DNA of 64,000 nt from Zygnema circumcarinatum SAG 698-1b (taxonomy: Eukaryota; Plantae; Zygnematophyceae). A program made the translations under genes and the position numbers. Shown piece by piece: positions 37,901-46,391 of the stretch; position 1 is the first letter of the stretch; every line of letters begins with the position of its first letter. The notes below the pieces were generated by a model. That model saw nothing but the letters and a program-made list of their open reading frames with translations. It did no database searches and was not told the DNA's origin. The stretch spans positions 682,001 through 746,000 of the forward strand of contig CM074807.1 in NCBI GenBank assembly GCA_037447605.1, written 5' to 3'.

Positions 37901-40900
37901 TGCTGTGAGAGCGGAGTTTTGGACGAGTGTTTTGTCTGCGACGGCGACGGAACAAGCTGCGCCTCCGTTGTTTCTATGTATATAACGGTACGGATTTAAA
38001 GCAATGCCAAGATCATTTTTTTTTTACTATTTTGAAAAATCATGAAATGAGAAGAGTGTGAAATAGCGGAAAGAAGTAAACAGTGAGTTTCCTTTGAAAA
38101 GAGTGCAAGGAAAGAAAAGGGGAGTCAATGGCTAGTTCAATTTTATCAAAAAAAAAAAAAAAAAAGGAAAAGAAAGGAAAGGGAAGGGGTTCGGGATCTG
38201 GGTTGGATTGGGTTGGTTGGAGTAGGTTTGGAATAAAGGGCTGAAAAATGTCAATGTTAGTTTTTATGGTTTTTAGGGTTTTTAGGGGTTTTAGGGTTTT
38301 TAGGGTTTTTAAGGTTTTTAGGGTTTTTAAGGTTTTTAGGGTTTTTAGGGATTTTAGGGTTCTTAGGGTTTCTAGGGTTTTTAGGGTTTTTAGGGTTTTT
38401 AGGGTTCTTAGGGTTTCTAGGGTTTTTAGGGTTTCTAGGGTTTTTAGGGTTTTTAAGGTTTCTAGGGTTTTTAGGGTTTTTAGGGTTTTTAGGGTTCTTA
38501 GGGTTTCTAGGGTTTTTAGGGTTTTTAGGGTTCTTAGGGTTTTTAGGATTTTTAGGGTTTTTAGGGTTTTTAGGGTTTTAAGGGTTTTTAAGGTTTTTAA
38601 GGTTTCTAGGGTTTCTAGGGTTTCTAGGGTTTCTAGGGTTTTAGGGTTTTTAGGGTTTTTAGGGTTTTTAGGGTTTTTAGGGTTTTTAGGGTTTTTAGGG
38701 TTTTTAGGGTTTTTAGGGTTTTTAGGATTTTAGGGTTTTTAGGAAAAAAAAAAGGGGGGTCTCTAGAAACCTGAAAAAATGTTAGCTGGTTTATATTGAC
38801 TTGAACTTTTTTTCTATTACATTTTTTATTTTATTTCACGTGAGCAGATGTTAAGATCCGCCAAAGCGATCGCTGCCGATGGCAATGTGACGTCAGCATT
38901 CGATGCACCTTTTCTCAGAGCTGTGAGAATCTCTCAAAACAAAATTTAAATAGAAGGGAAACACCTCATTACTGGTTTCCATAGAATTTATATTTATTAA
39001 TAATATTTAATTTATTTATTTATTTATATCATATTATTAACTATTTATGTATTCGCATGAAGAAGCTTACAGTTTTTAGCTCAAAATTCTCTAATGGGTT
39101 CAATTTAAAAACCCTAAAAACCCTAAAACAAAATTTTCTTCCACAACTCGTTGCAGGTCTCTTCTCTCCTTTCTGTCACGTCACAGGCAGTCAACGTTGT
39201 GTCCATACAGCAAGTGGACTCCCAAATTTGTGAAAAAATTTCCGACCTTCCCCTCGACACATGTGCCAAAAATTCCAACAGCAGTTCAACTGTCCGACTG
39301 TTCCGTGTTACGTTCTCCGTCGTCGCCATATCAGTACATTCTCATGCTTTTTGACCCAATGAAGTGAGGACACGTGTAAAGATTCCAGTTCCCTGTATCC
39401 CAACGCATTTTGAAACTGTAACGGTTCTCACATGGAACATCTGTGTATTGAATGAATGCTCTCCAACAGGCGAGAAACTCTGAGATTAAGATCAAATCAA
39501 TGGTGATTACGGAAACCCTAAAAAGTGAGATGGAGTGGGCCGTAAGCACGAATTCATCGTTTTTAGTGAGTGGGATTCCTTTCTTTACCTTGAATCTCAT
39601 GGTTTGGAGGGAATGCCGTACTCTTCGTTGTGTGAGAATCTCACAGTCGAAGCATTTCTATCATGCTAAAAAGTCCAGAGGAAGAGCAGGAAAAAAGAAG
39701 AAGAAGAAGAAGAAGATGAAGGAGAAGAAGAAGGAGAAGAAGAAGAAGAAGATGAAGAAGGAGAAGACGAAGGAGAAGAAGAAGGAGAAGAAGAAGATAA
39801 GAGAAGGAGAGGACGAGGGATGAGTCACTAATATGTCCTCTCCTTCCCTCCCACCTCTCCCACAGGGCCTTCCCGGCGTTACTATGGAAGCCTCTCCCTC
39901 CGTGCTCCGACAGGGCATCTGCGGAAATGGCAACTGCGAGAGGGGCGAGCGCTGCACCTCTCCCTCCTCTCCCTCTCCCTCCCCTCCCTCTCCCTCCTCT
40001 CCCTCCCCTCCCTCTCCCTCCCCTCCTCCCGCGTGCTGCCCCTCGGACTGCCCGTACGTGCCCCTACCCTGCCCCGTGCCCCCACCGCCCGCTGCCCCGC
40101 TTCCCTGCGCGGGCCGCGGCCGCTGCCTCGACGCAACCGGCCAATGCGACTGCTACGCAGGCAAGGCCCCCCGCCCCTCCCTCTCCTACTCCCTCTCACT
40201 CTCCCTCTCCTCCTCCCTCTGCTCCTCCCTCTCCTTCTCCCTCTCCTTCTCCCTCTCCCTCTCCCTCTCCCTTTCCTCCTCCCTCTCCCTCTCCCTCTCC
40301 TCCTCCCTCTCCCTCTCCCTCTCCTCCTCCCTTTCCCTCTCCCTCTCCTCCTGCTCTGGGCCTCTCTCTCTCTCTCTCGCTCGCTCTCTTCCTCTCTCTA
40401 TCTCTTCCTCTCTCTATCTCTCACACTCTCGCTGTCTCTCTCCCTCTCTCTCTCTCTCTCTCTCTCTCTCTCTCAGGCCACGTCGGCGCCGCCTGCAGCG
40501 TGTGCGCCCCCTCTTGGACGCGCGCTCCCTCCTCCTCCCTCTGCTACCGCCTCCCCAACGCCTCCATCCTCGCAACGGCCCCAGAGCTGCTCTACGCCCC
40601 TCCTCCTCCTCCTCCTCTCCCTCTCCCTCTCTCTCCCCCCGGGAGAGGGAGAGGCCGCCAGAAGCTGTCCAAGGCGGCCATAGCGGGCGTGGTCCTCGCG
40701 GCCTTGCTCCTCGTGTTGGGCGGCGTCACGCTCGCCCTCGCGGCGCTGCTCGTCCTTAAGGGGGGGGACACGAGAACCACGAGGACCGGCGCGGATGGTG
40801 AGAGAGGCTCGCTTCTGCGAGCAAGGGAGGAGGGAGGGGGGAGGGGGAGGGGGAGGGGGAGGGGGAGGGGGAGGGGGGAGGGGGAGGGGGAGGGGGGAGG

Positions 40901-44400: not shown

Positions 44401-46391
44401 AACACTAACCCTAACCCTAATAACAGCCCTAAAAGCGCATCCACTGCTGTATGCGGAGGAGGGGTCAGATTCCGCATCCTCCGGAGCTCCTCCTGTTTCG
44501 GAGAGCGTTAATCCTGCGCTCCTGAGTGTCTAAAACCGTCTCTTTCGGGGATTCCAAAGGCAGCTCTCGATGCGCTTCAACTTCTGCAAAAAGCATGAAA
44601 TGGAGAGGGCGAGGGATGGGGGGAGGAGGCGAGGAGGCGAGGGGGCGAGGGGGCNNNNNNNNNNGGAACGGGAAAGGGAAGGAGGGAGGAGGGAAGGGGG
44701 GAAGGGGGGTAGGGGGTGGGGGGGAGGGGGGTGGGAAAGCGGGGGAGGAGGGGAAGGGGGGAAGGGGGAGGAGGAAGGGAGTGAGTGATACTAACAATCC
44801 ACAGTGTACAAACGAGCCAATCCTTGCTCCTTATGAACATGGCCACAGCATTAACCATTTCCGGCCTCAGTTTTGTTGGCCTTATGGCTCATTTACGTCG
44901 TAAGCTAATCCAAGTATCGTTTGAACTTCAGAGTCGTCGAATATTCAAATAATTCAAGGTTTTTATGGTCCTAAACATGAAACGTTCCAGCGTCCTTAGA
45001 TTTAAACCTCTTTCGCTTGTAGAGATAATTCCATAGACAATTTCAATTTCATCGCCATTTTTTTGTTTTCTTTCTAGAGACTTTTTCCTTGATGAGAGTG
45101 AAACTCACGTGCTGTTGAAACGGGTTGCACCGTCGCAGTTGGTCTCCGTCGGGCCCTCATTATGACGCACCCTAAAGCTGAGAAAAGTATGAAAATAACG
45201 GAAGCGAAAACCACACAGCCCACCACCAATCCGATAACCGCTCCTTTAGACAGCCCTCCTCCTCCTCCTCCTCCTCCTCCTCCTCCTCCTCCTCCTCCAC
45301 TACCACCCGAAGGTGATGAACCGTTCCTTTCACCTCCGCTCCCTCTGTTTGAGGGCGGAGGTGGATTTGGACCGTTGGGTGGGACGGGTGAGGGGGGTTG
45401 GTAGCTTGAAGGAGGCGGCGGAGCGATGTCACCGATCGAGGTGATGGCTATGAGAGCGGTCGTGTTCGGCTCGCGGTAGCAGAGGGAGGAGGAGGGAGCG
45501 CGCGTCCAAGAGGGTGCGCACAAGCTGCAGTCGGCGCCGACGTGGCCTGAGAGAGAGAGAGGGAGGGAGGGAGAGGGAGAGGGAGAGAGAGAGAGAGAGT
45601 GAGAGAGAGAGAGGGAGAGAGAGAGAGAGAGAGAGGGAGAGGGCGCACTCCGTCAGCTTCAAACGCACAAACGCGTTGCGACCAAGTTCGCACAAGTCTC
45701 TACCAAGCGTCAAAGCAGCTCCCAAGCCTCTCCGGGCCTGCATTGCATTCTCTCACCGAGGCGCCCCAAAGAGAGCGAGAGAGAGAGAGAGGCCCAGAGC
45801 AGGAGGAGACGGAGAGGGAGAGGGAGGAGGAGAGGAAGAGGGAGAGGGAGGAGGAGAGGGAGTGGGAGAGGGAGGAGGAGAGGGAGGAGGAGAGGGAGGA
45901 GGAGAGGAAGAGGGAGAGGGAGGAGGAGAGGGAGGGGGAGAGGGAGAGGGAGAGGGAGGAGGAGAGGGAGGAGGAGAAGGAGGAGGAGAGGGCGAGGGAG
46001 AGGGAGGAGGAGAGGGCGAGGGAGAGGGAGAGGAAGCGGAAGGAGGAGAGGGAGAGGGAGTAGGAGAGGGAGAGGGAGTAGGAGAGGGAGGGGCGGGGGG
46101 CCTTGCCTGCGTAGCAGTCGCATTGGCCGGTTGCGTCGAGGCAGCGGCCGCGGCCCGCGCAGGGAAGCGGGGCAGCGGGCGGTGGGGGCACGGGGCAGGG
46201 TAGGGGCACGTACGGGCAGTCCGAGGGGCAGCACGCGGGAGGAGGGGAGGGAGAGGGAGGGGAGGGAGAGGGAGGGGAGGGAGAGGGAGAGGGAGAGGGA
46301 GAGGTGCAGCGCTCGCCCCTCTCACAGTTGCCGTTTCCGCAGACGCCCTGTCGGAGCACAGAGGGAGAGGCTTCCATGGTAGCGCCGGGAA
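39870..46391. repeat. Near-identical inverted repeat pair inside proteases A and B (39870-40550 and 45473-46391)
   Basis: Manual alignment: few differences across the [10 protein letters not shown]...CPSDCP...CDCYAG|HVG...LCYR coding blocks, plus shared intron sequence. Confidence 0.9.
42187..43295 (-). CDS. Gene C: secreted protein with signal peptide, RHLLQ motif, Pro-rich linker, acidic stretch and an ~170-aa domain with 8 Cys; 3 exons (43295-43199, 43101-42847, ~42712-42187)
   Basis: MATPTRALLMLVLLAVGMAATQASPRHLLQTT|VPPGLPPP...PPPDTDVYDGPDAFDLVDEANTTDAYLQ...|KLKGSCVTFQYG...APNGWVVTK*. Phase-1 junctions are consistent. No family recognised. Confidence 0.75.

Follow-up and report, generated by a model that had tools for sequence, protein, structure and literature searches.

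Two convergent protease genes of the alga Zygnema circumcarinatum, A and B, carry near-identical inverted repeats close to their 3′ ends. Do these repeats form a switch that exchanges the membrane anchors and tails of the two proteins by inversion, or do they record the copying of one gene into the other? We address this question in a 64-kb window (the whole stretch of DNA analysed), for which the initial annotation had proposed a shufflon-like, tail-swapping switch and had named recent localized gene conversion as the simpler reading. The simpler reading fits all of our measurements, and the shared tract is most likely the product of recent interlocus gene conversion between the ancient paralogs A and B.

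Architecture of the convergent genes

Genes A (+) and B (-) are convergent, tail-to-tail paralogs that share one architecture, comprising an S8 subtilase, TSP1 repeats, an EGF-like module, a TM helix and a short tail. The gene A model is based on exon blocks homologous to B and to full-length liverwort relatives, together with Pfam matches to S8, TSP1 and EGF, and its approximate start is the ATG of a signal-peptide ORF at 25904. Gene B is recognized by homologous exon blocks and catalytic motifs and is traced upstream as far as its first conserved block, at 58160.

25904..41497, + strand: gene A, S8 subtilase with TSP1, CCESGxLDxC repeats, EGF-like module, TM helix and short cytoplasmic tail
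44465..58160, - strand: gene B, paralog with the architecture of gene A

Both genes carry the catalytic motifs LDT|G, GHGTHCAG and one more, which supply the Asp, His and Ser of the S8 family and identify A and B as predicted members of Peptidase S8 (subtilases). The S8 Pfam match in A/B is weak and comes from a single exon; two S8-positive relatives are colinear with the two genes. The exons and introns at the 3′ ends are laid out as follows.

39866..40160, + strand: A exon N-1, first half of the EGF-like module (EGF_2, E = 1e-05)
40161..40476, + strand: A intron, GC-AG, donor CAG|GCAAGG, filled by a CT microsatellite (from sequence reading)
40477..40797, + strand: A exon N, which completes the EGF module at 40550 and continues with the A-specific linker, the TM helix and the beginning of the tail; phase-1 donor G|GTGAGA
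41382..41497, + strand: A last exon, ending LRNRRASMDSSC and then the stop; homologous to the B last exon
46107..46395, - strand: B exon N-1 (from homologous blocks and the arm alignment)
45547..46106, - strand: B intron, GC-AG, with B-only insertions of 72, 42 and 126 nt
45109..45546, - strand: B exon N, which completes the EGF module at 45473 and continues with the B-specific linker, the TM helix and the beginning of the tail; phase-1 donor C|GTGAGT
44584..45108, - strand: B last intron
44465..44583, - strand: B last exon, then the stop; on the A-side contig beyond an assembly gap
44655..44664, no strand: assembly gap in purine-rich low-complexity sequence of the B last intron, 71 nt upstream of the acceptor
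46813..46822, no strand: assembly gap in a (CTCCCT)n microsatellite of the B intron upstream of arm B
42187..43295, - strand: gene C, with three exons; its product has a signal peptide, a Pro-rich region and a Cys/Trp-rich domain of 180 aa

The GC-AG join in A is required for a complete EGF module, as in the Riccia relative; the module of exon N-1 is also present in the Marchantia and Riccia relatives. Because the gap at 44655-44664 falls within the last intron of B, no reading frame crosses it. An LSm-like ORF neighbours the locus; looking it up by exact match retrieved no entry.

The DNA between the repeats (40551-45472, 4922 nt) contains both TM/tail regions and gene C, in agreement with the ~4.9 kb described earlier. 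Besides the A and B tails, gene C is the only gene of the enclosed segment, and it is predicted from its sequence to encode an orphan secreted protein. It has no Pfam match, and a protein search with its exon 3 returned no homologs. The leads from its Atlas features, to beta/gamma-crystallin or inhibitor-I36-like proteins, are weak (0.67, short of the useful range), and its single-sequence AlphaFold model is poor (pLDDT 31).

A sharply delimited tract shared by A and B

Arm alignment places the inverted repeats across homologous parts of the two genes, and arm B (923 nt) is longer than arm A (685 nt) because of the B-only intron insertions.

39866..40550, + strand: arm A, spanning exon N-1 and the GC-AG intron and ending 74 nt into exon N
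45473..46395, - strand: arm B
39996..40197 (+) = 46271-46070 (-): longest perfect run, 202 nt

The initial annotation had described near-identical arms between otherwise diverged genes, and the coding alignment confirms this: identity is 0.956 inside the tract (360 nt) and 0.58 outside it (3558 nt), that is, 96% in the tract exons versus 58% elsewhere. The synonymous divergence that it had noted elsewhere is equally clear. The 20 exon blocks aligned outside the tract have nucleotide identities of 0.43-0.75 and dS values from 0.8 to uncomputable (saturated), as against dS values of 0.10 and 0.09 in the two tract exons; the exon cited earlier as an example of divergence has a dS of 1.47. Identical runs in the coding alignment reach 177 nt, compared with a maximum of 29 in 2000 column permutations. 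Paralogs diverged elsewhere thus share contiguous, beyond-chance identity that includes synonymous and non-coding sites, the pattern expected of interlocus conversion.

On the outside, the arms begin precisely at the splice acceptor of the penultimate ectodomain exon. The outer part (39866-39937) contains nine substitutions, seven of them transitions, giving 87.5% identity over the first 72 nt; the earlier count of ~6 differences in ~95 nt holds for 39879-39937, and the first four bases of the exon add three more. A substitution-free zone follows (39938-40197), interrupted only by in-frame indels of 3 and 9 nt in a Ser/Pro repeat. The identical block running into the intron had been put at ~180 nt; it is real and measures 202 nt, the last 37 of them intronic, and identical stretches between the arms also include one of 42 nt. 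In the last-exon part there are exactly three substitutions (40492, 40500 and 40508), as previously estimated, for 96% identity over about 75 nt, so that the exon substitutions between the arms total 12. On the inside, identity breaks off sharply at TGCTACCGC (40542-40550 / 45481-45473), just after the last EGF cysteine, which bears out the abrupt stop reported before the linker, TM helix and tail of each gene, and past this edge the aligned codons of the A/B tails show only 45% and 32% identity. The 64-kb window contains exactly two matches to a 40-nt core probe, where 0 are expected.

Within the shared intron, the text CTCCTGCTCTGGGCCTCTC is found at just two places of the 64-kb window, 40348 (+) and 45787 (-), which corroborates the shared intron text noted earlier. 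The first 37 nt of the intron and the 19-nt unique string are confined to the two arms. We dropped the CT-rich intron as a whole as evidence of homology, since a control showed that its score is largely compositional: the A-versus-B intron alignment scores 147, and the best unrelated CT-rich stretch scores 108. Firm anchors in the intron are limited to its 37-nt start and the unique 19-nt text. The B-only 126-nt insertion (45646-45771) is non-repetitive, and blastn of the remaining A and B introns found no match between the copies.

Arm B lies in a contig of 2148 nt (44665-46812) with a gap on either side, so its linkage rests on scaffolding and on the intact gene B model. This position, together with a 202-nt perfect repeat able to mislead short-read assemblers, raises the alternative of an assembly or polishing artefact, in which the sequence of arm B results from gap filling, mis-threading or homogenization with arm A reads, and the true B is more diverged or its outer and inner parts are wrongly linked. 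We consider this unlikely. Arm B is set apart from arm A by substitutions, in-frame indels and the unique 126-nt intron insert, and both copies retain open reading frames; the open frames, the coding indels of 3 and 9 nt and the preponderance of transitions in the outer part give the appearance of real divergence rather than assembly noise. Within its contig, each arm runs into copy-specific sequence at either end; for arm B these flanks are B-specific intron sequence and the B-specific TM/tail exon. The order and orientation of the contigs also yield an intact gene B, with a phase-1 donor at 45108, an acceptor at 44584 past the gap and a last exon homologous to that of A. The gaps lie in microsatellites, 420-800 nt from the arm, and not at the repeat edges, and paralogs at 58% background identity do not cross-map.

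Probable gene conversion, its direction and the scope for inversion

Saturation elsewhere between the paralogs, a contiguous tract that takes in synonymous and intron sites, a sharp inner edge and a length of 0.7-0.9 kb all fit gene conversion. From the tract, its edges, the anatomy of the genes and the contrast between the tract and their remainder, as observed in this one assembly of the locus, we infer the mechanism, its direction and the involvement of more than one event. Non-reciprocal homologous recombination with a non-crossover outcome would have overwritten about 0.7-0.9 kb of one copy with the other, a stretch that takes in the penultimate ectodomain exon and the following intron and ends 74 nt into the TM-bearing exon. 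The innermost 260 nt may have been converted most recently or most cleanly, and the flanks of the tract (87.5% and 96% identity) may stem from an earlier event of greater length or from mismatch repair that was patchy. After conversion, the intron would have gathered indels and slippage of its microsatellite.

Composition suggests the direction of transfer. Across the tract, GC3 in gene B rises from 0.38 to 0.74-0.88 and falls back to 0.46; in gene A, the GC3 of the tract continues into A's own tail exon (0.79). Gene A was thus probably the donor on the basis of GC3, a signal that GC-biased conversion could mimic.

Arm-to-arm gene conversion between inverted copies is known from the palindromes of the human Y chromosome. 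The A/B tract resembles the interlocus conversion of inverted paralogs and palindrome arms in its non-reciprocal copying between nearby inverted duplicates, its sharp edges, its contiguous extent of hundreds of bases with silent and intron sites included, and its GC-rich composition. Unlike palindrome arms, A and B are old duplicates that are saturated over the rest of their length, and homogenization is limited to one exon pair.

Conversion and crossover share intermediates, and conversion is therefore compatible with occasional inversion. In such a scenario, NAHR acting on top of conversion would place the 4.9-kb segment in both orientations among strains or over evolution, producing A-ectodomain/B-tail and B-ectodomain/A-tail hybrids after the manner of the flip/flop region on yeast chromosome XIV. 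The geometry is suitable: the arms are inverted homologous exons in the same phase that enclose both tails, so that any crossover would yield intact hybrids and flip gene C, and a perfect core of 202 nt would suffice for homologous recombination at a low rate. A tail-swap geometry of this kind is true of any convergent paralog pair. There is also a eukaryotic precedent, as inverted paralogs on Saccharomyces chromosome XIV are homogenized by conversion and the segment between them has inverted recurrently over evolution, though it is stable on the timescale of the laboratory (Salzberg et al. 2022, PMC9731477). The yeast repeat is 4 kb long, nearly identical and made of whole genes, and both orientations occur in many strains (PMC9731477). 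The A/B repeat, in contrast, is short (0.7-0.9 kb), imperfect, marked by large indels and intragenic, so that its inversion, unlike that in yeast, would make hybrid proteins; one orientation is known, that of the single assembly inspected. The GC3 of each tail also matches its current ectodomain (0.79 for A, a GC3-rich gene, and 0.46 for B, which is GC3-poor), a weak sign that the parental arrangement is the present one. Taken together, an inversion history added to conversion appears quite improbable. The homogenized arms would nonetheless be a natural NAHR substrate, and the specific expectation that populations of this haploid alga hold both orientations, with hybrid subtilases and a flipped gene C, is very doubtful.

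Extreme purifying selection on the nucleotides themselves, through an embedded RNA element or splicing enhancers and without any copying between genes, is hardly plausible. The encoded module is strongly conserved at the protein level from this alga to liverworts, but selection on protein is unable to explain a 202-nt identical run that crosses an exon-intron boundary. Zero synonymous change over 260 nt also stands against saturated dS in equally conserved neighbours such as the catalytic exons, and the identity enters an intron that tolerates insertions of 42-126 nt.

In the phage Mu G segment (Gin) and the plasmid R64 shufflon (Rci), inversion joins a constant 5′ part in frame to alternative 3′ parts. 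These are prokaryotic systems with a dedicated serine or tyrosine recombinase and short sites, and both orientations are present in every culture. A programmed site-specific switch of this type (shufflon, Gin/Hin), alternating protease anchors and tails, is close to inconceivable at the A/B locus: the geometry envisaged by the initial annotation stands, with inverted repeats flanking a segment that holds alternative 3′ gene ends, but this resemblance is formal, and an active switch is disfavoured by eukaryotic nuclear genes with spliceosomal introns and streptophyte relatives, by the lack of a recombinase ORF in or adjoining the segment (gene C having neither Pfam domain nor homologs), by repeats that are homologous exons plus an intron instead of short recombinase crossover sites, by arms that have diverged through 12 exon substitutions and the B-only insertions of 72, 42 and 126 nt, and by tails that match their own ectodomains in codon composition. 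We also rejected a hairpin or siRNA role for the inverted repeat, as the repeat is present in the sense orientation in the transcripts of both genes and the arms are separated by another gene.

Relatives and implications for the subtilase family

Streptophyte S8 subtilases that combine TSP1 repeats with an EGF/TM region at the C terminus include Calypogeia fissa CAM6098029.1, Marchantia polymorpha OAE28250.1 and Riccia sorocarpa R1sor_003652. These three liverwort proteins are like A and B in their domain order, their CGNGxCExGERC..CCxxDCPYVP..GQCDC module and their colinear exon blocks; they differ in having long low-complexity cytoplasmic tails, where A and B have short ones. The one locus examined among the relatives, from Calypogeia, holds a single gene, with no convergent pair within 10 kb. 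A search of a representative library with the arm exon returned relatives at no more than 56% identity (Chara, Closterium, Chlorokybus, liverworts and lycophytes), which identify the family but include no ortholog, and a full-length liverwort relative used as query returned only liverwort and protist relatives and no model from the genome of this alga. The protein search with the TM exon of B gave no matches, and our literature search for TSP1-bearing plant subtilases found no papers.

Gene conversion of this kind is ordinary, and the finding alone changes no concept. The locus offers a clean, well-delimited case of exon-scale concerted evolution between otherwise saturated paralogs, with a GC3 footprint that hints at the donor. 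For the annotation and phylogeny of this subtilase family it calls for caution, as the EGF exon would give a misleading tree. The locus is also a candidate for inversion polymorphism, and if such inversion were to occur, it would represent a eukaryotic flip/flop region that shuffles exons, namely TM anchors and cytoplasmic tails, and not whole genes.

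Convergent subtilase genes and their 3′ ends

That the window is eukaryotic shows in its spliceosomal introns, its many CT/GA microsatellites and the telomere-like repeats at interstitial sites. The convergent genes A (25.9–41.5 kb, +) and B (58.2–44.5 kb, −) are colinear with each other in an exon-by-exon block comparison, and their exons are colinear with full-length liverwort proteins from Calypogeia fissa (P0009, 1878 aa), Riccia sorocarpa (P0041) and Marchantia (P0011). Both encode, in order, an S8 subtilase domain (motifs LDT|G, GHGTHCAG and a third of 10 residues), four TSP1 repeats, CCESGxLDxC repeats, an EGF-like module, a single transmembrane (TM) helix and a short cytoplasmic tail. 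Proteins of Chara, Closterium, Chlorokybus, Selaginella and Diphasiastrum share the EGF-like module, and these relatives agree with a streptophyte-alga origin of the genome. At the Calypogeia locus (L001 10001–23619, GCA_965154635.1), P0009 is neighbored by TRM and Med4 genes, with no convergent paralog within 10 kb; a near-identical second copy, P0039 (1882 aa), lies on a different contig. In the window, two tRNA-Gly(TCC) genes of identical type (58884–58956 and 60569–60641, −), 1685 nt apart, adjoin the 5′ region of gene B.

Features of the A/B locus (exon N-1, penultimate ectodomain exon with the first half of the EGF-like module; exon N, the rest of the module, linker, TM helix and tail start)
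Exon N-1: A 39866–40160 (+); B 46395–46107 (−)
GC-AG intron (CAG|GCAAGG): A 40161–40476 (+); B 46106–45547 (−)
Exon N: A 40477–40797 (+); B 45546–45109 (−)
Last intron: A 40798–41381 (+); B 45108–44584 (−)
Last exon: A 41382–41497 (+), ends ..LRNRRASMDSSC, stop; B 44583–44465 (−), ends in its own 12 residues, stop
Gene C: 43295–42187 (−), three exons, between A and B
10-N scaffold gaps, whole window (n = 4): 9436–9445, 15875–15884, 44655–44664, 46813–46822

The last introns of both genes are in phase 1 and the last exons are recognisably homologous. In both genes the GC donor splits the EGF-like module, an intron position apparently kept in the Marchantia relative, whose annotated protein has 15 extra residues exactly at that point; the B exon preceding exon N-1 probably ends at a GC donor too (AAG|GCAATG, near 47781, −). 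The B copy of the GC-AG intron is longer than that of A (560 vs 316 nt) because of insertions of 72, 42 and 126 nt; the last of these, non-repetitive and B-only (45646–45771, −), is either a post-conversion insertion or a deletion in A. Gene A introns carry long low-complexity arrays (36880–37340, 38161–38700 and 40820–41170), comprising (CCCTAA)n of interstitial telomere-like type, in which CTCCTAA and CCTCTAA variants occur, a 9-nt minisatellite of at least 50 copies and, in the last intron, ~350 nt of (GGGGGA)n.

In the gene C product, a signal peptide and a Pro-rich stretch are followed by a domain of 180 aa rich in Cys and Trp. Pfam and protein searches returned no domain and no homolog, the Atlas feature comparison gave no confident neighbor, and the fold model was unusable (pLDDT 31). 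In Atlas features it weakly resembles clusters of beta/gamma-crystallin and peptidase-inhibitor-I36-like type (0.67), which is the sole lead; that gene C is a protease inhibitor set between two proteases is a neat but unsupported idea.

A near-identical tract in diverged paralogs

Alignment bears out the initial annotation's proposal of near-identical inverted arms; in the alignment they span A 39866–40550 and B 46395–45473. The outer edge falls exactly at the 3′ splice site, upstream of which the intron is unalignable between A and B. Identity is graded, from 87.5% in the outer 72 nt (9 substitutions, 7 of them transitions) through a 100% core to 96% in the inner exon part, where 3 of 74 exon N bases differ, as previously reported. 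Across 39938–40197 there are no substitutions, only in-frame indels of 3 and 9 nt in a Ser/Pro repeat. The identical block of ~180 nt said to run into the intron exists and extends 37 nt into it, but measures 202 nt (39996–40197). Shared intron text was also proposed: a 19-nt string is indeed unique to the two arms, but for most of the CT-rich middle the alignment partly reflects composition (score 147 vs 108 for unrelated CT-rich DNA), leaving this string and the first 37 nt, each confined to the arms, as the firm anchors. Similarity then drops sharply after TGCTACCGC, two codons past the last EGF cysteine, matching the abrupt end described earlier. A 40-mer probe from the core occurs exactly twice in the window.

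Elsewhere, in strong contrast, the paralogs diverge, as first noted, with nucleotide identities of 0.43–0.75 and dS from 0.8 to uncomputable over 20 other exon blocks. The exon originally cited as an example, carrying a 10-residue motif, has a dS of 1.47, against 0.10 and 0.09 in the two tract exons. Pooled coding identity is 0.956 inside the tract and 0.58 outside, and identical coding runs reach 177 nt, compared with a maximum of 29 in 2000 permutations. The near-identity of the arms is real and statistically overwhelming.

Probable gene conversion and less likely readings

Recent ordinary gene conversion between the convergent paralogs is the most likely explanation, and one we consider probable. 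The simpler reading already offered from sequence holds up: a contiguous, sub-kilobase tract covering silent and intron sites, embedded in saturated paralogs and sharply edged, has the textbook signature of interlocus conversion. The graded identity suggests either a single heteroduplex repaired in patches or two events that differed in age as well as in length. In gene B, GC3 rises from 0.38 in the preceding exon to 0.74–0.88 in the tract and falls to 0.46 in its own tail exon; in gene A, which is more GC3-rich overall, the tract level continues into the tail exon at 0.79. This pattern makes A the likelier donor and B the likelier recipient, composition hinting at the direction. GC-biased repair could contribute to it.

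An assembly or polishing artefact is distinctly unlikely but keeps a small residual probability. Protein-based searches for other assemblies or transcripts of the species found nothing. The copies differ in ways that suggest real evolution, with open frames, coding indels in multiples of three and mostly transitions (7/9) among the outer substitutions. Two gaps, one in the last B intron (44655–44664; purine-rich low complexity, 71 nt upstream of the acceptor, crossed by no reading frame) and one in a (CTCCCT)n microsatellite of the B intron preceding the arm (46813–46822), confine arm B to a 2148-nt contig (44665–46812), so its place and orientation come from scaffolding. In the given order and strand, B reads as a single intact gene, from its penultimate exons through the TM exon, the phase-1 donor and the acceptor past the gap to an A-like last exon, which supports this placement. 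Within its contig arm B is flanked on both sides by B-specific sequence, and the repeat edges coincide with neither gap. Both gaps near the tract, the two inspected among the four, fall inside microsatellites, which suggests simple repeats and not duplicated genes as the sites of contig breaks.

The initial annotation put a candidate tail-swapping inversion switch first; its geometry stands (inverted, homologous, same-phase arms), and nothing indicates a switch. A crossover anywhere in the arms would invert 40551–45472, whose 4922 nt match the ~4.9 kb first estimated, flip gene C and exchange the linkers, TM helices and tails of the two ectodomains in frame; such geometry holds for any convergent paralog pair sharing a 3′ region. 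Because conversion and crossover share intermediates, a rare inversion by NAHR on evolutionary timescales keeps a small probability alongside conversion. It has a eukaryotic precedent in the yeast chromosome XIV flip/flop region, which resembles the A/B locus in its inverted paralogs; there they are kept homogeneous, with recurrent re-inversion and laboratory stability (PMC9731477). A programmed, shufflon-like switch is extremely improbable, given the eukaryotic nuclear context, the absence of a recombinase in ORF, Pfam and homolog searches, the short, imperfect arms and, weakly, the match in codon composition between each tail and its present ectodomain. As a probable gene conversion tract, the locus is one more instance of an already known phenomenon.
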